This document shows, piece by piece, positions 16,967 through 60,517 of a stretch of DNA of 64,000 nt (its first letter is position 1; the number at the start of each line of letters is the position of its first letter). Below the pieces are notes generated by a model. The model was not told the DNA's origin. It made no database searches and worked only from the letters and a program-made list of their open reading frames with translations. Made by a program: the position numbers and the translations under genes. The DNA is taken from assembly GCA_013416795.1 (NCBI GenBank), contig RQSC01000757.1:179087-243086 (forward strand). The letters are read 5' to 3'. This DNA comes from Prasinococcaceae sp. CCMP 1430 (taxonomy: Eukaryota; Plantae; Prasinodermophyta).

Positions 16967-17014
16967 NNNNNNNNNNNNNNNNNNNNNNNNNNNNNNNNNN
17001 NNNNNNNNNNNNNN
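16967..17014. other. assembly gap (48 N)
   Basis: Run of N. The dynein ORF is open up to the gap and its start is not visible on the other side, so the true gap may be longer. Confidence 0.98.
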
Positions 17015-19586: not shown

Positions 19587-19651
19587 NNNNNNNNNNNNNN
19601 NNNNNNNNNNNNNNNNNNNNNNNNNNNNNNNNNNNNNNNNNNNNNNNNNNN
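19587..19651. other. assembly gap (65 N)
   Basis: Run of N immediately before the partial SulP copy. Confidence 0.98.
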
Positions 19652-31140: not shown

Positions 31141-32506
31141 ATGCGGATGCGGCGGGGGGTTTGGCGGGCGGCCGCCGTCGCGCCGGCTCGGGGCGGGGAA
31201 GGCCCGCGGCCGATCCGGGTTTTCTTGGCGGGGCTGCGCGGGGCGGGGGGCNCGAGGAGAGGGAGCGCCGGCGGCAGGGAGGGGACGCAGCGGCGGGAGA
31301 GGGAGGCCACGCCCAGCAGCAGACGCAGCAGCCGCACGGGGATGAAGAGCCGAGGGGCGAGACCACGCCCGAGGCCGAGGCCGAGAGCAAATCCGAGGCC
31401 GGGGGCCAGGGGGAAAAGACCGCGGCCGAGCCCGCGGCCGTGCCCGCGCCGCTGGCGGCGCGCGACGTCGCCCTGGGCGTGGAGGAGGAGGAGGACCGCA
31501 CCGCGCTGTCGAAGTTCCTCTTTCCAGACAAGGAGGAGCTCCCCGACGATGTTGAGATGTCTGTGTGGGATCACCTCGACGAGCTGCGCGAGCGCGTCAT
31601 CATCACCGCGCTCTTCTCAGTGCTCGCCATGGGCGGCTGCTTTGTGTTCGCCAAGCCGCTCATCGTCTTCCTGGAGGCGCCCGTGTTGACCACCGGCGTG
31701 CGCTTCCTTCAGCTGTCGCCGGGCGAGTTCTGTGCGTGCGCGTGCACGTGCGGCTTTCGCAACGCGCGAGGCGCGCGCGCGGCGCGCCTCGCTCCCCTCC
31801 CCCCCCCTTTCCCCCGGTCGCGCGCGCGCGCGCGCGCGCGCGACCTCGAGCGCGCGCGCGAGCGTCTGCGTGCCCGTGCCTGGCATTCTCTGACCGGTGG
31901 CTCGCCGCGCGGCGTCGCACGTCCGCCTCCTGTCCCGACCCGACTCTTGCCCGCTTTGGCCGGTCGCGCGCAGTCTTCACGAGCCTGAAGACCGCGGGCT
32001 ACTGCGGCATCCTGCTGGGCTCGCCCGTGATCCTGTACGAGGCGATCAGCTACATCGTGCCTGGGCTGACGGTGAAGGAGCGCCAGTTCCTGGGGCCGAT
32101 CGTGCTGGGATCGAGCGTGCTATTCTACGTCGGCGTGTGCTTCGCGTACGCCATCCTCACGCCCGCGGCGCTCAACTTCTTCATCAGCTACGCGGACGGC
32201 GCGGTCGAGTCTCTGTGGTCCATCGACCAGTACTTCGAGTTCGTCCTGGTGCTGCTCTTCTCGACGGGGCTGTCGTTCCAGGTGCCCGTCGTGCAGGTGT
32301 TGCTGGGCTCCACGGGTGTCGTGAGCTCGGAGACCATGCTCTCCGTTTGGCGCTACGTCATCGTGGGCGCCGTCACTGCCGCGGCGGTCCTCACCCCCAG
32401 CACCGACCCGCTCACGCAGTGCCTGCTCGCAGGGCCGCTCATCGGCCTGTACTTCGGCGGCGCCTACGCGGTCAAGGCGCTGGAGGCGCAGCGCGGGACG
32501 GCGTGA
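31141..32506 (+). CDS. tatC: chloroplast twin-arginine translocase TatC; intron 31732..31973; frame discontinuity at N31252
   Basis: [34 protein letters not shown]|[41 protein letters not shown]. The transit-like ATG 31141 is out of frame with the downstream part across the single N. Confidence 0.92.
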
Positions 32507-47816: not shown

Positions 47817-48695
47817 CGCGACTGGGGAGGGACGCCGGGGGGGGGGGGGGAGATGTGCGCGCCCCGCTTCGCGCGCGGTGTGCCGCACAGCCGCGCCCCC
47901 CGCCCCCCTTCATCCTCTCCCTCCCGGGCGCCGCCCGGGCGCCCGCACCCATCGCCTGCACCGCCGCGCGTCCCCGTCGCGATCGCGCGCTACCTCGCGG
48001 CCGCGAGCGCGATTGATCCCAGGCTATGATCCGGAATCGGTGTGTGTGTGTGTGCGCGCGGCACACGCAGCGCGCGCTCGTTCCGATCAAGACCGTACCA
48101 AACGAAGCTTTCACATTTATTTTTCGCGCCTGCTGCGGCCTGGCTGGACGCGGGAATCGGCCGCCCTCGCTTGGTTGGTCGAGTACCTGCTCGCACCCGC
48201 GCGCGCGCGCGCGCCCGCGCCACGCACTGACCGAGAAAATGACTCGAAATGTGGCGCGTCGATCGTCAGAATCGGCGAGACATCCGGCCTGGGGGACTGA
48301 GAAAACGACTGGGGGAGCCGACGCTGTGGCGATGATGCGCGCGGGCCGCCGACCCGCCCGCGTTCCGTGCGGATCTGTCTGTGTGCGTGCGTTCCCCGAC
48401 GCGCCGCCGAATTCGAAACGCGCGCGGGCCGGGCCGGGCCCGCCGCCGCGGCTGCGGGAAGGGGAGGTGTGGGTGGGGCGGGTGGGGTGGGGCGGGGTGG
48501 GGTGGGGTGGGGAGTGGAACCGGCGCAGTGCGGCACAGCGTGCCCGCGCGCGCGCGCGGCGGAGCGGGCAGGAGCGGGGGCGGTCGTGCCACCGGCGCGC
48601 TCGCGCTCCCTTCCCTTCCTCCCCCCCCCCCCCGGGGGGCCTAAACACCCCACCACACTCACCAACGCCCATCCCGCTCCCGCAGAGGGGGCGCG

Positions 48696-51600
48696 ATGGC
48701 GGCGCACGAGGCTGAGCGCGTTGCGCGGCGCAAGATGCGTGCGGTGCTTGGTGACCTGGCGGACAAGGACCTCGCCCCGCGCGCGGCCGCTGCCGCGCGC
48801 GCGTTGCTCGCGCCGCCGCGAACAGGGACGCCGCGTGCGGCGCTCGTGGGTGCCATGCGTGAGGTGGCGGCATCGCTCGCCGACGTGGGCTCGGCGACGG
48901 GCTCTCACGCGCTCGCGTGCGCCGAGCGCATGCGCCTATTCGCATTCGCGGCGCGGGAGAATGGCTTCGTCGCTTCCGCACCGGCACTTGGAGGCGCCAT
49001 GACGGCCGTGCGGCGGGCCCTCGCCAGCGCTGACCCAAAAATCGTCGCTGCCGCAGGGGAGCTCACCGCCGCGCTCTGTGCAGCAGCCGTCGCCGCAGCG
49101 AGCGGCACCGACACGAGTGCACGCGCTTGGGCCCCCGCAGGCGCTCCCCCCGCGTGGATCAGCGAGCTCATGCTCGGCGGGTGTCTCAAGGTGCTGGCGT
49201 CGGGCGACCGCGGCAAGCACGCCGCGGCGGCCCGCGTGGCTGCCACCGCTCTCAAGGCATGCAACGTGCTACAGTGCGCAGCTGCGCGCGCGGCCGTCGC
49301 AGCCACCTGGCGTGAACTGTGCGGTGTGCTCGACACGGACAGCCTGAAGCCTAGTCTCGGAGAGGCCTACCTGCCGCTGGAGGTCTGCGTCACGCTGATG
49401 GCAACGCACAGCGCCAGCGGCGTGGACGACGCTGAGGGCGACGCGCTACTCCTTGTGTACCCGACTGGCGCTGAAGTTAAGGTCAGCGCGAGGGCGGCGC
49501 TGGAGACGCTGCGCGTCGGCAACTGGCACGCCAAGGTCATGGCTTCGGACTTTCTGGGGGCGCTTGTCCGTACCGTTGGCGCGGCGCAGGGCGTTACGGC
49601 CGATTCGCACGAGGCGCTCGCTGCAGATGCTCTGGCGAGCTGCAAGCAGGCCATCGCTGAAGGCCTGGCCATGGCGAAGTACGACAAGATAGGGAACGTG
49701 CGACGGGCTGCATCCAATGCCATGGACAATCTGGCCGCAACGTCACCCATTGCCGCTGGGTCCAAAAGCGACGCCATCCCCATCGGCGCGACCCCGGTCA
49801 TGCACGAAGTGGTCGAGGCCAGACACCGAGCAGCGCGCCGCGCGCGCAGCACGCATCGCCCAGCGCACATCGTCCGCGCTGAGCACATGGAACGCCAGCA
49901 GCACATAGCGAAACAGCATCGCGAGGCGCTACGTCGTAGTGAGGAGCGTGAACACGCGCTGGAGGCCATGAGGCGGATGGGCGCGGCTGGTGCTCGCTTC
50001 GAGCCAACCATCGAGGTCCTCGCGCTCACACCTCCGCCTAACTCGAGCACAGGGAGCGGTGAGCACGATCCGTTTGCCGCAGTGACTGGTGCTCCCGACG
50101 ATCTCGACTTGCTAGACGCCCAGGTGGATGCGGCAGTGGAGAGGGCCGCCGCTGAGGCGGCCGACATCGTGCGGAACATAACATCTGGCGCTCTCGTGCC
50201 CGAGAACACGAGCGGACATGGAGGCGCGACATCTGGGACTGCGCTGGCTGTCGCCGCCGAATTCGATGCTGTAGACACTCCGAGCGCCACACCGGCCATG
50301 AGCGTCAGCGAGCCCGTAGAGCAGGCTTGTTCGAAGGACTCAGATGTGGTGCCAGACTCTGATGGAGGGGACAGCGGCCCTCACGACTCGGGGGCGCAGA
50401 GCACAAGCTCTGGCGCCCAAGGGCGGCCCTCGCCTGCAATGCCCACGGCGTCCGAGGAGGCAGAATCGCCCTTCCCCGCGCAGGCAGCACAGTCGCTTGG
50501 GGAGGCTGAGCAACCAGTAGCGATGCAGTCGAACCCGGCGTTCGAAGAGGACCCGGGTCTCAACCAAGACGATGAAGCTCCGGTCGATAGCAAGTCACCG
50601 GGCGCGTACAGCGGCGCCGCTCTAGGTGACCATCTGGAGCGGATCGATCCTGCGGCGGACGAGGGGCCAGTGGCGTCGCACGCTAACCCGCCCCAGGGCT
50701 CTGATGATCTCGGTTTCCTCGTGGAGAGCCTGGCTTCGGTACGCCGCTCCCAGATAATTGCTCGACGCAGAGCACTGGCTGACGCCGAAGAGCGGAGGCT
50801 GCGCAGCGCCGCTGCCGCCAAAATCACCGCCATCAATGCCCAGATGGAGCGTGACGTGGCCAGCGCACGAGCTACGCACGAGAAAGAGATCGAGGCCGAC
50901 TTCGACATGTTCGTGGCGTCAGTACTGCCCCGGGTGAGGGCAATGCTGGACGGCACTGACGCTTCGAACTCGGTCGCTGCTCGCCTCAAGAGCGTCGCCA
51001 CCTCTCCGCTCTCCGCTTCGCGCGCAACGAACGCAGATGTCCAAGCAGAGGCACCCGAGGATGCAGACAACGCTGTGGCTGCGCCCGCGCAGGCCACCCC
51101 TGATTCAGCGGCGCAGGCGTCCTCTGACGCCTCAGACTTCAAGATGTCATCGCTGCAGAGCACTCCGTCCAATCCCCAGGTCACGACCGACGCCCCCGGC
51201 GCAAGTACGAGCCTCAGCGACATCAGCGACACCGACTTCATGCACAAGCTTCGTGATGTGCTGCGAGGGCCCGGTAGCACGATCCCAGCGAGCAGCATTG
51301 GGTCTCCGACCGAGCAGGCCCAGTCATCCTCTGTCGTCGGCGCGCCAGCTGCCTCGCCGAGCGACGAGGCCGTGGGCGAAGCGGGCGCCTCGCCACCACC
51401 CGCTTTGGCGTGGACTGTGCCCATTGGGCCCGAGCCGTCGCTCGGGGCTGCGTCAGCCGTTGGGGCCGCCGCGCAACAGGCTCCCTCGCCGTCCGTGGGC
51501 GGCGCGCAGTCGACGCATCGGGCCGCCGGTGCGCAGGCGCCCTCGCCAGGAAGCGAAGTGAAAGCCTCATCACAGAGGAGCCTTAGCCTTCGAGCGCACT

Positions 51601-52070
51601 CACTGGGCGGTGGTGCTACCGCACAGCCGATGGACTCTCCGAGGGCGTGGTTCGGTTCGGTGCCGCAACAGAGGGCGTTCGGATCTCCAGCCGTTAGATC
51701 CCCAGTCGCCACTTCCCCTGACGCAGCATCCCCGGCAGCGTCGTCCTCGCCTGCTCCAGGCTCGCCGCCAAACGGTCAGGACAGCGGGAGCTCCACCCCG
51801 ACGACACGCAAAGACGGCCAACTGGGCGAAGAGGGAGGCTCGGCCCCCGACCTCGACCGCGTGTCGACCATTCTTTCATCGATGCCTGCGACAGCTGCTG
51901 ACAACGCAGCCTATGGGGGAGTCAAGGACGACGGCGGCGACAGCGGCGATGGCGGAGGCCAAACCACACCAGAGCGAGCCATCAGCGCGTCCGAGACGCC
52001 CCTCACCCCTGACGAAACCGTCGAAGCCATGCTAATGGGTATGCTTGCTGACGCGCAGACGTACATATAG
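48696..52070 (+). CDS. large protein with N-terminal HEAT/TOG-like region (possibly TORTIFOLIA1/SPIRAL2-like) and long low-complexity tail
   Basis: 1124-aa intronless ORF; AKYDKIGNVRRAA resembles the R/YDK.K.VR motif of TOR1-like HEAT proteins; coiled coil and Ser/Pro-rich C-terminus. Confidence 0.55.
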   Translation: MAAHEAERVARRKMRAVLGDLADKDLAPRAAAAARALLAPPRTGTPRAALVGAMREVAASLADVGSATGSHALACAERMRLFAFAARENGFVASAPALGGAMTAVRRALASADPKIVAAAGELTAALCAAAVAAASGTDTSARAWAPAGAPPAWISELMLGGCLKVLASGDRGKHAAAARVAATALKACNVLQCAAARAAVAATWRELCGVLDTDSLKPSLGEAYLPLEVCVTLMATHSASGVDDAEGDALLLVYPTGAEVKVSARAALETLRVGNWHAKVMASDFLGALVRTVGAAQGVTADSHEALAADALASCKQAIAEGLAMAKYDKIGNVRRAASNAMDNLAATSPIAAGSKSDAIPIGATPVMHEVVEARHRAARRARSTHRPAHIVRAEHMERQQHIAKQHREALRRSEEREHALEAMRRMGAAGARFEPTIEVLALTPPPNSSTGSGEHDPFAAVTGAPDDLDLLDAQVDAAVERAAAEAADIVRNITSGALVPENTSGHGGATSGTALAVAAEFDAVDTPSATPAMSVSEPVEQACSKDSDVVPDSDGGDSGPHDSGAQSTSSGAQGRPSPAMPTASEEAESPFPAQAAQSLGEAEQPVAMQSNPAFEEDPGLNQDDEAPVDSKSPGAYSGAALGDHLERIDPAADEGPVASHANPPQGSDDLGFLVESLASVRRSQIIARRRALADAEERRLRSAAAAKITAINAQMERDVASARATHEKEIEADFDMFVASVLPRVRAMLDGTDASNSVAARLKSVATSPLSASRATNADVQAEAPEDADNAVAAPAQATPDSAAQASSDASDFKMSSLQSTPSNPQVTTDAPGASTSLSDISDTDFMHKLRDVLRGPGSTIPASSIGSPTEQAQSSSVVGAPAASPSDEAVGEAGASPPPALAWTVPIGPEPSLGAASAVGAAAQQAPSPSVGGAQSTHRAAGAQAPSPGSEVKASSQRSLSLRAHSLGGGATAQPMDSPRAWFGSVPQQRAFGSPAVRSPVATSPDAASPAASSSPAPGSPPNGQDSGSSTPTTRKDGQLGEEGGSAPDLDRVSTILSSMPATAADNAAYGGVKDDGGDSGDGGGQTTPERAISASETPLTPDETVEAMLMGMLADAQTYI

Positions 52071-52313
52071 CCGGAGCCCGACGCAGCGGCAGCGGCCAGC
52101 GCGGTGGCGGCCGGTGAGATCGTAACACTTGGGCCTATGTACAAAATTTGCCTTTGTTACGTACAATCGCGAGCGCTCGCGAGGCTCAGAAGGCGGAGAT
52201 GACTGGAGGATGCACCATGCGCGTGCCGTTGGGATTCCCATCAGCTCTGTCCAGGCTTGCGTTGGCACGAACGAACGAGACGAACGCGCCGCGTGCAGAG
52301 CGGGCAGAGGTTG

Positions 52314-54083
52314 TCATGGGGTCCCGGACAGGAACGCGCCCGTGACCTCGTCCGCGGACATGGCGTGGCCGACCCGCCCGCCAGCGGGGCGCACGAGGAG
52401 GCTCGGCGACGCCGACGCTGTCGCCTCAATCACCTTGGCGCTTGCTTCGAAATGATCGCAGAGCTCATGGTGTGCACTGGCGGAGCGCGGCATGCTGCTC
52501 TCCACCCTCGACGCAGTCTCGCTCTTGCGGAGGCTTCTCGCCTTGGTCGGCATTGGCTCGCATGCGCGGGAGTAGAGGCGCAGGCGCATGATACCACCGT
52601 CCGGAAAGATGTGCAGGCGGACGTGCGATATCTTTCCCACGTCCAGCAGCTGCCCCTCGGCCCGCGTGAATGTGTGATTGGTGTCAGGCTTGAGCGGGGT
52701 GCGCTCCAGCAGCGTGCGCCATTCGGCATCACCGCTGAGAATGTCCTCGGTGCTCGCGTGCGGCGAGTAGATGGCCTCGACGGACGCGCTTTCTGGATAG
52801 TTCCCCCTGAAGTGGGCAGTGTCTAAGTGGAGTTCCTCGGCGCCATCGGCGACGGCTGCCAAGCGCAGCACACACCAGTCCGAGGCGCAGTACTCCTCCT
52901 CCTCCTCGGCGATGCTATCGCACGCCATCTGCTCGTTGGCCTCGGCACGCGCTGCCGTCAGGTCCAGCCTCTTGGACATGAGCGCCGGCGCTGAGGCAGA
53001 GCGCGGCATGCCGGGCGGGGCAGGAATGCGCTTGAGGGACTTGGGCGTGGTGAACGACTTGGCTTTGCCGCCCGGGCCGAATATGAGCGGGCGGTGCGGG
53101 TTGCGCGCCGTCTCCCATCCGTCGCCCATGTTCACGCCGCGACCCTCGCGCAGCAGGTTGCGCGGCACGCCGTAGTGCTTATTGGAGCACGCGACGCCAC
53201 GCGCCCCGAGGGCCGCGCTGGCGAGGTTCGCCACGCCGACCGCGGCAATCTCCTTCTCAAAGTGCGCCACGGGCGTGCCCCACACGCGCAGCCGCGCAAT
53301 GCCGCCGTCGGGGTACGAGTTCAGCCGCAAGTGCGTCATGCGCTTGCTTGCCATCGCCGGCGGCACGCGGAAGCGATGCACTGAGTCCCCAACGTAGCCT
53401 GGTCGCAACCGCTCGAGGGCGACGAGCTCGCACCACTCCCCCGCCTTGTGCAAGGCCTCGTCCGCCGCCTGGATTTGCGCCTGGGTCGAGCAGGTGCCCT
53501 GCTCCCCGAGGTCGCCACGCGCGAACTCGGCCGGCAGCCACTCGCCGTCGGCCTCGTCGAGCGAGGCCGCCCAGACGCTGCACGCGGGCACCTGGTTGCC
53601 GGTGAAGTGCGCTGTGTCCACCTCGACGCCGTGCACACAGCCCGCCATGCCTAGTTTGATCACGCACCAGTCGTGGCCGGGCGTGCGCTTGCGGCGCGTC
53701 TCCCAGCCGTCCATGACCTTGCCCTGTGTGCAGAACGCGTTCGGGTCGAACGCGGGCGCGCTCGTCTTGAGCATGTTGCTCGCGACGGCGAACCACTCGT
53801 CGGTGGCGAACTGGACAGCTCCGCCGGAGCGCGCCTCGGCGAGGTCGCACAGCTCGTCCTCCCACTTCTCGGGCGGCACCGTCTCGAACCCCTCGTCCAC
53901 CACGTCGTCCTCCTCCTCGCAGGCCGCGGCCATCGCCCCGGCCATGGCCGCGGCGGCGTTCGAGTCTCCCTCGAACGACACCTTGCGCACACGCGCGCCG
54001 TCGGCGGCGCCGCAGAACGCCTCGGCGACCGCGGGCCCAATGCCGTCCTCGGTCGGGCCGGCGCCCATCGTCCCGGCACCCAT
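52314..54083 (-). CDS. ALLC: allantoicase (allantoate amidinohydrolase), two allantoicase repeats
   Basis: FATDEWFA, DGWETRRKR.PGHDWCVIKLG, DTAHFTGN, PDGGIARLRV; second repeat HYGVPRNLL...GDGWETAR, DTAHFRGNYP, FPDGGIMRLRL. Confidence 0.93.
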   Translation of the reverse strand: MGAGTMGAGPTEDGIGPAVAEAFCGAADGARVRKVSFEGDSNAAAAMAGAMAAACEEEDDVVDEGFETVPPEKWEDELCDLAEARSGGAVQFATDEWFAVASNMLKTSAPAFDPNAFCTQGKVMDGWETRRKRTPGHDWCVIKLGMAGCVHGVEVDTAHFTGNQVPACSVWAASLDEADGEWLPAEFARGDLGEQGTCSTQAQIQAADEALHKAGEWCELVALERLRPGYVGDSVHRFRVPPAMASKRMTHLRLNSYPDGGIARLRVWGTPVAHFEKEIAAVGVANLASAALGARGVACSNKHYGVPRNLLREGRGVNMGDGWETARNPHRPLIFGPGGKAKSFTTPKSLKRIPAPPGMPRSASAPALMSKRLDLTAARAEANEQMACDSIAEEEEEYCASDWCVLRLAAVADGAEELHLDTAHFRGNYPESASVEAIYSPHASTEDILSGDAEWRTLLERTPLKPDTNHTFTRAEGQLLDVGKISHVRLHIFPDGGIMRLRLYSRACEPMPTKARSLRKSETASRVESSMPRSASAHHELCDHFEASAKVIEATASASPSLLVRPAGGRVGHAMSADEVTGAFLSGTP

Positions 54084-54886
54084 CGCCGCGCCGCCGCCGC
54101 CAACACCCGCGCGCGCGCGCGCGCCTCGCCCCACACGCCGCTCCGCCCGCGCCGAAATCCCCTCCCAAACCGCAGATTCGCGGCGCCCCCAGCGCCGCGC
54201 TCCGCATGCGTTCCGCCCTTTCCAACCCCCTACCCCCCCCCCGGGAACCGCGCAACCGCCGGAAAAGAAATGAGAGGAATGCGACTCTGCTGCGGCGCGC
54301 GCGCGAACGCGCGCGCGCGCGCGCGCGCGCGCGCGCGGCGGTCCCAGCCCGGCTCCGCAGCCACAGGCAGCCTCAGATTCAGGTGCAAAAAAGCGTCGAG
54401 CCGCCGCGTGCACGCACGCACGACGCACAACCACAACGCACACACAAACAGACGCGCTTCGATACATCAATCGGTCGGAGGCGCGCCCATGCCTGCCTCC
54501 CAAAAACGAAACCGCGACTGAAATGATACAGTACATCAAATAGTGACTAGTCCTACTGTCAGGTTGAAGTGAATTTGTGTGTCTGTGATGCATTCAAAAC
54601 GCCATCAAAATTGGAGTGAGTTTCTTTGATTCCCGCGCTTCGGGCCATCATTTTGAATGATCTGCAGACCCTGATTTTGCGCCGTTTGGGGGGTGGCGGA
54701 TGGATGCGGATCTCCACCGCGGACGCCGGGGAGGTCGGTCGCGCGCGTGGCGGCGGCGCGGCCTTTACGACCTGCGTTCCCCCCCACGCACGCGCGCACG
54801 CACCCCTCCACACGCGCACGCGCGCTCGCGCCCCCAGGCGACCCGCCCGCCTCGCCGGCGCCCATTCAGGCGTCCTGAGCAGGTGG

Positions 54887-56862
54887 ATGGGGGGGGCTCA
54901 CCGAGGGCCGCGATGAGCGCGGCATCGTCGATCTTGGGATCATGGCTGAGCGTCACCACCGCTGTGGCGGGATCCGGCTGCAGCGCGGTCACGGCTTCGT
55001 CTGGCCAGCGGTCGTCGAGCATCACCCCGGGAAACCGTTCAGCGGTCAAAAATCTCCCGCGCGGATCGATGACCGTCGTCGAGATGCCCAGTTCGCGGGC
55101 AAGGCCGGCAAGCGTCTGGGCGATCTGCACCGCCCCGACGATCAGCAGCCGGCGCGGCGGATCATAGCGGTTGACGAACGCCCCCGGCCCCTCGGCCGAA
55201 AGTCCGCTGGCCAGGTCCGTGCCGACGTCCAGCGTCTCGCCCCGGCTCCGCGCCGCATCGATCGCGTCGAACAGGGCAGGGGGAAAGCCGGCCTCGGAGA
55301 CCGGCTGCACCAGCACCGAGATCTGGCCACCACAGGGTAGCCCGACTTCCCAGGCGGCAGGATCGGCGACGCCATAGGTCTTCACCACCGGGGGCGACCC
55401 CGCGATCACCTCGGCGGCGGCCTGCAGGATATCGGTCTCGACACAGCCGCCAGAGACGGAGCCCGCGAACCGCCCGTCCGCATGGACGAGCATATGGCTG
55501 CCGCGCGGGCGCGATGGCGACAGCAAGCAGAGCTGCGAGGAGACCGCGGGTTGTGCCTACGAAGGCGGCGGCAGCGGTGGCGGCGGCGGTCCCGCCGGGC
55601 GGCAGGGCGGCGAGTTCGACGCGGTGGTCATCGGCGGGGGGCCGGCGGGCGCGTTTGCGGTGGCGGCGCTCGCGCACAAGTCGCTCTCAGTCGGGTGGGT
55701 TGACGCGAGCGGCCACGACGCTGGAGCGCTGTCGCAGCTCGTGGGCGTGCCCGCCAACACCCACGGCGCGCGCGTACGGGCGTGGTTCCAGGGCGGCTTC
55801 CTCGATGACGCACCGGCGTTCGCGGCTGATGCCCGCGTGAGACGGGCGAAGCTGTTGCGGGACGATGAGTTTCCACCGCTGGGCGTCCTCGCAGGTGCGG
55901 TGCGCGCGCTCACGGAGCACTGCGGGACAGCTTTGCCAGGGGTCACACCCATACGAGCACGTGCGACGTCCCTTGACCGAGACGACGAGAGCGGCAGGCT
56001 GGTCGTTGGAATACACAGTGCCGCAGGCGCCGGCAGCTTTCTGCGCGCCCGCGGTGGTGTCGTGCTCTGCACAGGCGCAGCACCGCGCGCGCCGCCGTGC
56101 GAGCTCACCTCTGCGCTCGCCGCCGCACAGCGGCACGTCGCGCTTATAGACATGACGACAGCGCTTGACCCCGAGCGAATGCGCGGAGAACTGGACAGGC
56201 TGGGTGCGCAGCGAGTGGGCGTCATTGGACGCAGCCACAGCGGCGTCTTGGCCGCCAGAAATGTGCACCTCGCGCGGGGAGGTGGCGCATGCGTGCTCTA
56301 TCACGACGCCAAACCGATTAAGATTGCAGTGCCCCTCGGCGATCACTACATACACGACTTCACGGGACTGAAGGGCAAGGCAGCAGACTTTGCTGTCGAG
56401 CATCTGATTGATGATGAGATCCTCCCCGGCGGCGCCCCTGACGGCGCGGAGCACGCAGCCGTGGAGCAGCGCGCATACACTTCGCTGCTTGCGCGCGGCG
56501 CCGTCGATGCCGCCGAGCTCGATGCCGTCGTTGTATGCACCGGCTTCGATCGCAGAGCGCCTGTTGAAAGTGTGAACGGCGTGCCGCTCTCCGTCGAGGC
56601 GGTACGAGCGCTCGACGTCGATTCACGATCATTTGAGCTCGTCGCTCCGTCTTCAAGTGACACCGACCCTCGCGCAGGTGGCGGCTCCGATTCTGCGAGT
56701 GTGTGGGCGGGGCTCGGACTTCACGGGTTGTACGGCACAGGGATCGGCTTCGCGCCACTGCACCGAGCATACTACGGCAACGAGCGCGCGATAGGCGTCG
56801 GAATCTTTCGTACCGCCGCTGAAGCCATCGCTGAGGGTATCGCGGCCAGGTGTGTTGCGTAG
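54887..56862 (+). CDS. FAD/NAD(P)-dependent oxidoreductase (pyridine nucleotide-disulfide type), apparently split near its start by the xdhC insert (54887..54901 joined to 55513..56862)
   Basis: Rossmann motif FDAVVIGGGPAG, second motif VGVIGRSHSG, GLKGKAADFA, VVVCTGF. The frame is open from 55513 and joins ATG 54887 (MGGAH) when 611 nt are removed. Confidence 0.7.
54902..55512 (-). pseudogene. xdhC: internal fragment of bacterial XdhC/CoxI (xanthine dehydrogenase accessory protein), truncated at both ends
   Basis: RPRGSHMLVHADGRFAGSVSGGCVE...EVGLPCGGQISVLV...PPRRLLIVGAVQIAQTLAGLA...TVIDPR...AVVTLSHDPKIDDAAL matches XdhC motifs. The N-terminal ATVV/WGS part and C-terminal YIGALGS...TPAEIA part are absent; no introns. 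Confidence 0.9.
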
Positions 56863-56948
56863 TACTGGTGTTGTATAATAACATTTGTTGGATTATGGTA
56901 ACAATTATCGATATGTGACAAGGGAGCGTAAGGAAGGCTCACGGCGCC

Positions 56949-59900
56949 TTACTCGGCAGCGGCCTCAGGCTCGGCGGCGGCCTCAGGCTCGGCGGCGGTC
57001 TCAGGCTCAGAGGTGGCCGCCGCCGCCTTGAGTCCCTCCACCTCCTTGCGTGCAGCCCTTCCACGCACGACGGCCTGGATCTTGAGCGCGGCGGCGTCCT
57101 CTGCTGCGTCCTGCTTCTTCGCCGCCACTCGCTTGCGCGCGAGATGACCGCGCGCGGCGCTCTGCACCTTCACCAGGCGGGCCTGATCCTCGGCGCTCAA
57201 GTCGGGCAGCTCCAGCAGATCTTCAGTGGCTGCCAGGGCGGCTGCCAGGGCGGCATCGGCGGCCATGGTCTCCTCTGGCGTCAAGTCGGGCAGCTCCGGC
57301 AGATCCTCTGTGGCTGCTAGGGCGGCCTCCAGGGCGGCGTCGGCGGCCATGTTCTCCTCTGCCTCTTTCTCCTCCTCTTTTGCCGCCTCTCGGGCAAGCT
57401 CCTCGTCTGCCACAATCTGGACTCCCGAGTCAGCAAGAATCGACGCGAGCGCCTCATCTGCGAGCAGGCTCGCACCAGCCTGCGCCATGAAGGCAGAGCC
57501 GGGCGACATTGGCCTGACACCGGGCTCGAGGTCCTCCATAGCGGCCTCTGCCTTCTCGAGGGCAACGGCGCTGAGCTCGCTCACGAGCTCCGCGACGGTG
57601 TCATCGGCAGCATCCTGATCGGTGAAGAGAGACTCCAACACCACACCGCGCACGAGCTCGGCAGTCACCTCGCGTGCCATGGCCTTGGCCTCGGTGGCGG
57701 TGATGGCGTCCTCCTCGACAGGCCGCCGTGCGACAGCAGGCGTCTGTGGCTGCGACGCAGGGCCCACCGAGTGGGCATCAGGCGCACTGCCAATCGCTGC
57801 GACCATTGCCTCCTTCGCCGCCGCCTCCATCGCCGCCGCCGCGCTCGCCGCCTCGCTCGCCGCTTCTTCCGCCGCTTTTGTTCGTCGCGCCTGCGCGTCC
57901 GCACGCGCCTTGCGACCGCGTTGGACCGACTGAATACGCAGCGCGGCGGCATCCTCAGTCATGCCGCCGTCATCGTAGGTGTCTTGCTTGGGCTCCACCA
58001 GTATGGCGCTGGCGTCTACATCGCCAGCGCCGGCGAGCGCCATGAGCAGCTGCGCCACCGTTTCGCCGAGCGTCTTCTCGGCGGCCTGCGCGTCCGCTGA
58101 CAGCGCCGGATCGGCGTAGGTTGGCCGGGGCGTGTAGAGCTCGCGGATCAGCGCCGAGCGGCGCTCCTTGCCCTCGTGCATGGCGTTCTGCGCCGCACGG
58201 CCGCGAAGCAGGCGCTGAAGCAGGCGAACAGCGCCCACTACGCGCGCGTTGTCCCCCTCGGGCGCCTCGAACGTTGGCGTCACTGGGCGCTCGCCAAGCC
58301 CCTTGCTGGCGCGGCGACGCAAGGTCGCCTTGGGCGCCTTGCCCACGCTGACCTCGTTGGGGCGCGGCCAGGCGTCGCCGTGGCCGCGTCCGCCCTCCGC
58401 TTTGGACGTCTCGAGCAGCTCTGAAATGTGCTCGAGGCGCGCTGCGATGGCTGCCGCCTGGCGCTGCGCGGAGTCCTTCGGCACCCGCTCCGACAGTGGG
58501 GTTGGGGCCTCCACTGTGGGGAAAACCGCCTTGCGCGGCAACGAGGACTCGAGTCTGTTCACACCCTGCAGGTCCGCGGGCACGAAGGGCTCGGGGTTGA
58601 TCTCTTTGCCCTGCATTGGTTTGTCCGTGAAAACGCCGTTGCGTGTGAGCGGTGCGTACACCTCAGACGAGCCCTCGGCATACTCGCGGATGACGTCGCG
58701 CTTGAGATGACTACGACCGCTAGTAGGCACGGACTGCCCCGTCTTTCGGCGCTGCCCGGCGAGCTTGCGCATGTTGGTGTTGCGGCGTCGCTGGATGTTG
58801 GCGAAGGCCTTGCGCGTCTCCTCGAGCTTGGTGCGCTTGAGCACATCCAGACGTTCGGCATGGTACCGCTCGCGTCCGTCCTCGCGCGCGGCCAACTGCT
58901 TGCGCATGACGTTGAGGCGCTCCTCCTGCAGCTTGGCGAGCTCAGCCTCGCGCTCCGCAAACTCTTTGGCCTCCCACGCCTCCATCATGCGCTTGCGTAG
59001 CGGCAGGTTTTTGAGGTCGTTTGGGGCAGGCAAGGACGCTTCGAACGCGGCCTTTTCACGCGCCTTTTCGACCATCACTACCTCCGGCAGCCCACCCGGT
59101 AGGCCCTGTCCGAACTTCAAGCCGGCGAGCATCAGCACCTCTGGGTTGGGCTCTTCCTCGGTAAGGACATAGTCTGGCGAGTACGGCATGGTCTGCGCCT
59201 CGGACTCACGGTAGTCCGACTGCGTGCCAATGGTCACGCCGCCGCCCGGCTCTTCCGTCGCGTCCATGGCCTCGGCGTCCTGCTCACTGGCCGAGTTCTC
59301 CATGTGGCCCACGTAGTCCGCAAGCTGCACGCCGGCGACAGAGGTGGGCAGCGGCATCAACTCGGGCAGTTTGGTCACATACTGCGGGCGCCGGAAGAAC
59401 TTGAATCGATTAGAGCCCGTCACGTTGGTCCACTTCGACTTGGCCTGGCGGTCTGCTGCGCTGGATTGCTGCGGAACGAACTCGCGATCGACGAACGGCG
59501 GCAGCTTGTCATTGTGCTTGAAGCGGTACGTCTGCGACGGGTGGGTTGGCAGCTCACTGAAGAAGTTGCGAAACTCCGCCACGCGCTCTATCTGGAAGCC
59601 CGACGCACGGCTCTGCTCGCGGAAGTGGTCGCGCGCGCCCGACACCGTGTAGACGGTATCTGCGTGGCGCGGGTTCGGCACGCGCGTGCGTGCCAAGGAG
59701 CGTCAGCGACAAAGCGGCGTGCGGCGGCGAGGGGGCCGAATGGCGTGCTGCGCCACGTAGCGCGCGGCGTCCCACGCGCACAGGGGCGAGAGGCACACGA
59801 CGCGCAGGGGCGTTCGCGCTGATGCCGGCCCAAGGCTGGCGCAGTCACGGCGCCCATTGATTTCCGCTCCGCGAGTGGAAACGCGGGCACCGCAGCGTGC

Positions 59901-60370
59901 TCCTCGCCCCCCACACCGCCGGCAGCGTCCGTCGCACGCTCGCGCAGCACCTCCGCCGAGCGCGCTGATGAGCTCGGCGCCTGGGGGAAAATATAAAACG
60001 CGCGCGCGCGGGGAGCTTGCGGGTGCCACGCGCCCAGCGCTTCCCATGGCGCAATCGATGCTCCACACCCCCAAATGCGAGCGGTGAGGGGAGGAAAGCA
60101 AGTCTCTCCCTCGTCGACACGCTCCGGCGCTCCACCGCGCACCCACGCGCCCGCGGACAGGGGGGTTGACCGGCGCGCTCCGCGCGCGCGCGCGCGTCCT
60201 CAATCTGCTCCATTTCCCCTACGGGTCGCTGCACCGCTGGTTCGGGCCACCCGCGCCGCGCGCCGCGCTGCTCCCACCGTCCGCCCGGCCCCGCCCCCGT
60301 CCCCTCGCCGCGCACATGCGAACGCACCGTAGAGCGAGTCGAACGCGCGCGCCTCGGACAGCCCTGCCAT
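56949..60370 (-). CDS. CFAP91: cilia/flagella-associated protein 91 (FAP91/MAATS1) with IQ motifs; exons 60328..60370 and 56949..59659
   Basis: Splice gives MAGLSEARAFDSLY-D-TVYTVSGARDHFRE; TIGTQSDYRESEAQTMPYSPDYV and GLPGGLPEVVMVEKAREK; IQ motifs LQRLLRGRAAQN, IQSVQRGRKAR, VQSAARGHLAR, IQAVVRGRAAR; internal 84-bp coding repeat at 57198/57282. Confidence 0.9.
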
Positions 60371-60517
60371 CGCCGCCGCGCGCAGGGCGCGCGGTACTCG
60401 GGGCCTGGCACAGGCGTGGCGTCGTTGAGAGTGTGCATCTCAAGCGCGGCGCGGCGCGCGCTGTGGGCTGTGCGCCCGCCCGCGCGCCCGCTTCCCACGC
60501 TCTCGCCAGGCGCGGCC

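Follow-up and report, generated by a model that had tools for sequence, protein, structure and literature searches.

A Sphingomonas xdhC fragment across the start of an algal oxidoreductase gene is very likely a contaminant-bridged mis-assembly

A fragment of a bacterial XdhC gene lies across the first codons of an oxidoreductase gene in the stretch of Prasinococcaceae sp. CCMP 1430 DNA analyzed here (64,000 nt of contig RQSC01000757.1, hereafter the window). Our comparisons make it very likely that this fragment is a contaminant-bridged mis-assembly, that it does not belong to the algal chromosome, and that it would record no gene transfer. Mis-assembly is favored because the fragment shows zero divergence from its bacterial source, replaces native sequence rather than adding to it, belongs to a composite fill, is absent from two relatives, adjoins an intact open reading frame (ORF), and sits in a window that contains gaps. 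A sequence-only reading of this DNA had proposed either a recent capture of bacterial DNA that disrupts a nuclear gene or an assembly join that is chimeric or contaminant-derived. The first of these is disfavored by the evidence below, and the second fits it.

Results

The region around the fragment is made up of the following features, given in window coordinates.

52314..54083, minus strand: algal allantoicase gene (Pfam Allantoicase, 2.8e-84)
54879..54923, plus strand: native 5' leader and start of the algal oxidoreductase gene (45/45 nt to L007:379-423; present in L006)
54903..54923, no strand assigned: 21-nt match between the alga and Sphingomonas XdhC (from the anchor comparison of the window, L007, L006, and L001/L002)
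54924..55513, minus strand: Sphingomonas-only XdhC part, 590 nt (with 54903-54923, the 611-nt identity block)
55514..55573, no strand assigned: 60-nt filler, absent from L007, L006, and L003, ending in a GGC run
55574..56862, plus strand: FAD/NAD(P)-binding oxidoreductase body, collinear again with the wild relatives

Identity and donor of the fragment

The minus-strand ORF at 54765-55526 has partial Pfam matches: XdhC_CoxI at E 2.6e-14 over profile positions 21-68 of 68, and XdhC_C at E 1.1e-13 over no more than positions 1-75 of 125. NCBIfam XdhC models, including XdhC_rel_AOR, match this ORF too, and the internal XdhC/CoxI piece recognized on this strand from the sequence alone is thus borne out. 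That piece had been described as lacking both its start and its end, and this proved correct as well: window 54903-55513 (minus strand, 611 nt) corresponds to codons 32-235 of a 303-codon Sphingomonas XdhC gene, without codons 1-31 and 236-303 and with neither start nor stop. The coordinates first given, 54902..55512, were right in substance and one base off. By its domains, the window copy is a piece of a member of the PF02625 + PF13478 chaperone family and cannot encode a working chaperone.

Over these 611 nt the window is identical at every position to a Logan contig from run SRR32573216 (L002:135-745), and it matches the chromosome of Sphingomonas sp. NIBR02145 (CP114791.1, L001:10095-10705) at 610 of 611 nt, the sole mismatch falling at window position 55392. 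With zero differences to one sequence and one to the other, there is no trace of amelioration or host adaptation. The alphaproteobacterial origin suggested earlier can therefore be narrowed to Sphingomonas, at 100% and 99.8% nucleotide identity. A protein search returned thousands of Sphingomonas XdhC matches, and the best of them, at 99% amino acid identity, was the NIBR02145 protein (P0001). The window copy resembles P0001 in both Pfam domains and in 99% of amino acids over codons 32-235, but P0001 comes from a complete gene, whereas the window copy lacks both ends along with start and stop. Because NIBR02145 was isolated from soil in Korea (PMC10353387), the nearest sequenced relative of the donor is a soil bacterium, whereas the nearest relatives of the host are oceanic.

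Identity of this degree bears directly on the idea that a true algal XdhC-like gene, bacterial by old descent and linked to purine breakdown through the neighboring allantoicase, has this fragment as one of its exons. XdhC and allantoicase are indeed both part of purine catabolism, and ~0.8 kb separates them on the same strand. However, an old acquisition is hard to reconcile with 100% nucleotide identity to Sphingomonas over 611 nt and no amelioration. The fragment also has no splice-like boundaries and no further exons, it overlaps the oxidoreductase start codon on the opposite strand, and no such sequence is found in the native allele of the relatives described below. A host exon of this kind is scarcely credible, and we regard it as refuted by the identity to Sphingomonas DNA together with the native allele.

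No terminal inverted repeats or target-site duplication were found at the ends of the fragment, as had been noted before, and on this ground a transposable element or insertion sequence was rejected as its source. In a 5-mer log-odds scan of the window (Sphingomonas vs. host), the XdhC piece was the top peak, and no second embedded bacterial piece was found. The next peaks, at 29.2-30.1 kb, belong to a normal intron-containing algal ribulose-phosphate epimerase gene and not to a Sphingomonas-like insert.

The native locus in wild relatives

The closest public sequences to the host were TARA Oceans scaffolds, at 98-99% nucleotide identity, and a Logan contig, at 99.5%. Two of the TARA scaffolds, which come from different samples and were reached through cluster members of two host proteins, give the native structure of the locus. 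L006 (scaffold_10059) spans the allantoicase plus 1.1 kb on its upstream side, and L007 (scaffold_24595) carries a 458-aa oxidoreductase (P0250) and 412 nt upstream. L006 matches the window at 98.8% over 48608-54125 and at 93.3% over 54108-54923. L007 matches it over 54283-54540, then over 54879-54923 (45/45 nt), and then over 55568-60504 (~98%). The two scaffolds also agree with each other, at 95% between L006:6-84 and L007:455-379.

The XdhC fragment is absent from both of these native alleles, which belong to strains 1-2% divergent from the one sequenced and so leave room for a strain-specific event. A search of relatives for an empty site had been proposed as a check, and L006 and L007 accordingly supply a native allele without the fragment. 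After 54923, L007 continues with 77 nt of a GCG/GCGGCCGCG-type repeat at 91% GC and then rejoins the window at 55574, and L006 enters a GCG/GCGGCCGCG-type run with extra copies of a GGCGGGCGC unit that extends to the end of the scaffold. Between the same two anchors, the window holds 650 nt (54924-55573) against the 77 native nt of L007, and these 650 nt comprise the 590 found only in Sphingomonas and 60 of a different make-up. The site is a replacement of native sequence and not a clean insertion.

A third TARA scaffold, L003 (scaffold_26623), is native 3' of the GGC run and has ~142 nt of unrelated sequence (L003:1-142) on its 5' side, and it is probably a chimeric metagenome scaffold. Since unrelated sequence has been joined there at the very same GGC run, independent short-read assemblies also break at this point. 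Such a scaffold invites the converse explanation, in which the chimeric joins lie in the TARA sequences and it is the window that shows how the species is really arranged. Chimeras do occur among metagenome scaffolds, and L003 clearly looks like one here. Still, L006 and L007, besides their separate samples, were reached from opposite sides of the locus (allantoicase and oxidoreductase, respectively) and are mutually consistent. L007 moreover contains a clean ATG-initiated ORF of 458 aa, whereas the gene in the window has no usable start. We therefore consider it very improbable that the TARA scaffolds are the ones in error.

The divergent intergenic region between the two genes (54084-54878) is native. 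Within this allantoicase-oxidoreductase interval, L007:260-378 is unrelated to window 54541-54878 (119 vs. 338 nt), and L006 keeps the window version at 93%. The leader at 54879-54923 is 100% conserved in L007 although the intergenic DNA upstream of it in that scaffold is otherwise unrelated. On the allantoicase side, a Logan contig (L005, run SRR22824306) matches window 54042-52136 at 99.5%, with 10 scattered base substitutions. Its first 30 nt (L005:1-30) were not found anywhere in the window and may represent an upstream exon, variation between strains, or an artifact of the contig. The only literature found for the two SRA runs and for Prasinoderma together with Sphingomonas was the NIBR02145 genome announcement.

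The oxidoreductase gene

The native start codon of the oxidoreductase is ATG 54913-54915, where the called gene for P0250 also begins in L007, and the protein opens with MSAAAAGAADAARG (MSAAAAG...). From this ATG, the native gene reads MSAAAAGAADAARGAAAANARGGAPGRRGGGGGGGPAGR.GGEFDAVVIGGGPAG. The ATG at 54887 instead begins an upstream ORF of nine codons (MGGAHRGPR, stop), and the TGA of this ORF shares bases with the true start (ATGA). This overlap of stop and start may represent a termination-reinitiation arrangement.

These positions overturn part of the sequence-only reading, which had joined ATG 54887 to the oxidoreductase frame by deleting 611 nt. The arithmetic of that frame-restoring deletion holds, but its biology does not, because the native start at 54913 lies inside the supposed insert. 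The predicted native N terminus, MGGAHDGD (MGGAH-DGDSK), was mistaken: MGGAH belongs to the upstream ORF. In the same way, DGDSKQSCEETAGCAYE had been taken for native oxidoreductase sequence, but it derives from the 60-nt filler at 55514-55573, which the native allele does not have.

Beyond the filler, the oxidoreductase body carries the GxGxxG motif VIGGGPAG at ~55630 and is 98.1-98.5% identical to L007 and L003 in nucleotides and 99% identical to P0121 in amino acids. The full-length native protein P0250 matches Pfam Pyr_redox_2 at 27.7 bits. The downstream ORF is intact in the window, with 99% protein identity to the wild relatives, and it is the start that the window gene lacks in usable form; the gene is probably intact in the living alga. 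Among 1.8 billion representatives, 167 weak relatives were found at E up to 0.001, just one of them beyond 1e-30, and a 5.8-billion-protein index held only two close relatives. Comparison with the PDB gave Rossmann-motif matches only. The oxidoreductase belongs to a small, poorly characterized group of two-dinucleotide-binding flavoproteins.

An upstream exon with an intron ending near 55563, as L003 and L004 had seemed to indicate, was dropped because the ORF in L007 is continuous from its ATG. Farther downstream, 50 nt of the window (60394-60443) with GT...AG-like ends are absent from L003 and L007. This segment may be a small intron that is polymorphic for presence or absence, or else a further small filler.

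The junctions and the filler

Since the TARA scaffolds match the window up to 54923, the stretch 54903-54923 is common to alga and bacterium. This 21-mer is found without mismatch in Sphingomonas XdhC as well as at the native locus of the alga, and 24 of 25 nt match when the preceding CAC is counted. Given that L006 and L007 are identical to the window until 54923, the junction falls inside this exact alga/Sphingomonas match, that is, within a k-mer common to both sources, as would be expected of a chimera.

A shared 21-mer between these two organisms is not surprising. We estimated chance sharing by counting k-mers common to 20 kb of Sphingomonas DNA and the window, which is ~68% GC throughout, for k = 10-18 and extrapolating with a per-base match probability of 0.33. 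By this estimate, a 5.0-Mb Sphingomonas genome and a 25-Mb alga of such composition should have ~6,400 21-mer matches by chance alone. A k-mer-based assembler or gap closer would therefore meet many points at which to jump from one genome to the other. The host-side junction pattern had no match in JGI metagenomes, and neither the chimeric ORF nor the 1124-aa ORF of the window is on record in public assemblies.

On the right side, the 60-nt filler sits between the Sphingomonas piece and the point at which the native gene resumes, and its terminal GGC run meets the native GGC/GGT run. It was not found in the 20.9 kb of Sphingomonas DNA compared (L001), and no exact 27-28-mers from it occur in GTDB genomes or JGI metagenomes. 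As the filler comes from neither the native allele nor L001, the fill between the two anchors is composite. The filler reads like the start of another GC-rich gene (ATG GCG ACA GCA..., MATASRAARRPRVVPTKAAAA).

Signs of gap closing

The window contains N runs of 48 nt (16967-17014) and 65 nt (19587-19651) and single Ns at 31252 and 38702. Such runs are typical leftovers of an assembly that has been scaffolded and gap-closed, which we take this one to be, and the sequence adjoining all four of these positions may be unreliable too. The type of assembly matters here, as bridging by contaminant reads would be difficult to account for if the window came from a high-coverage long-read consensus. The only published Prasinoderma coloniale genome is a PacBio assembly made with NextDenovo, with 22 chromosomes, and was screened for contamination only at the contig level (PMC7455551); the window may derive from a different assembly. 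Only 82.6% of that genome was callable from Illumina reads, a shortfall that its authors did not attribute to GC content (PMC11884799) and that we read as a sign of uneven short-read coverage of a GC-rich genome.

Discussion

How could a piece of Sphingomonas come to stand in an algal gene? The 77-nt, 91%-GC, GCG-type repeat corresponds to the first ~26 codons after the start, and it would have been poorly read, leaving a hole in the assembly because short reads cover such a repeat poorly. What is missing from the window is thus native sequence of a kind that is hard to sequence. The hole would then have been bridged with contaminating Sphingomonas reads, along a path that left the alga through the chance-shared 21-nt stretch. 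This path would have followed the bacterial XdhC gene for 590 nt, passed next through the 60-nt filler, and returned to the algal gene at the low-complexity GGC run. The step responsible was presumably a de Bruijn path or a gap closer, and we infer that Sphingomonas reads were present in the libraries. Sphingomonas is a common laboratory contaminant genus. The contaminant join that the sequence-only reading had offered as its fallback accommodates the shared 21-mer, the missing 91%-GC sequence, the second filler, the gaps, and the relatives without the piece.

The main competitor is a real capture that took place very recently, in the strain or culture that was sequenced, when a break in the GC-rich 5' repeat was repaired with stray Sphingomonas DNA. 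Such an event would have removed the 77 nt, inserted the 60-nt filler, and inactivated the oxidoreductase. Repair by end joining does leave small deletions and composite fillers behind in some cases, and no N separates the fragment from its collinear host flanks. A homology-assisted capture could just as well have been guided by the 21 nt shared at the left junction, zero divergence fits an event in culture, and the relatives compared are diverged strains (by 1-2%). Nevertheless, both wild relatives lack the fragment, and neither relatives nor other assemblies gave any support for the junction. Nor was there the divergence from the donor or the adaptation to the host that would speak for a transfer. 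Soil-related Sphingomonas DNA would further have had to enter a marine picoalga's nucleus, and the site coincides exactly with a short-read-refractory sequence and with the break in another assembly (L003), in a window that shows gap-closing leftovers. On balance, we consider a recent capture unlikely. We place a shade less belief in its more specific form, a real fragment of naked Sphingomonas DNA captured through the 21-nt homology at the GC-rich first codons of the oxidoreductase. If true, however, naked-DNA capture would be a candidate ongoing route of bacterial DNA uptake at the fragile GC-rich promoters of a picoalga.

Genuine captures of foreign DNA at chromosome breaks are known, both as organelle-to-nucleus inserts and as bacterial inserts in some eukaryotes. 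The XdhC piece resembles them in that it is short and non-mobile, lacks inverted repeats and a target duplication, and shows homology at one junction. It differs in that genuine captures are supported by reads and are usually present in relatives or diverged from the donor, whereas in the window native sequence has been replaced just where sequencing fails. Contaminant chimeras in draft eukaryotic genomes offer a closer parallel. In the tardigrade Hypsibius, false calls of horizontal transfer reportedly collapsed once the reads were re-examined. The likeness lies in DNA nearly 100% identical to that of a living bacterium within a eukaryotic scaffold, in a donor of the Sphingomonas type, and in relatives that lack it. 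By contrast with that case, the foreign DNA here is not a whole contig but a 611-nt bridge inside a gene, entered through a chance-shared 21-mer. A contaminant of this form would be missed by contig-level screens such as the one applied to Prasinoderma coloniale (PMC7455551).

Contaminant bridging, our preferred explanation, leaves the XdhC piece most likely without importance as biology, for there would have been no gene transfer. Its significance is rather one of quality control. Failed GC-rich stretches seem to be masked in this assembly by contaminant or misplaced sequence, and no Ns mark them. Hidden fills of this kind would lead to spurious gene disruptions and bacterial fragments and to gene models that are cut short. 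Claims of horizontal transfer or gene loss made from this assembly thus need to be checked beforehand against reads or against scaffolds from wild relatives.
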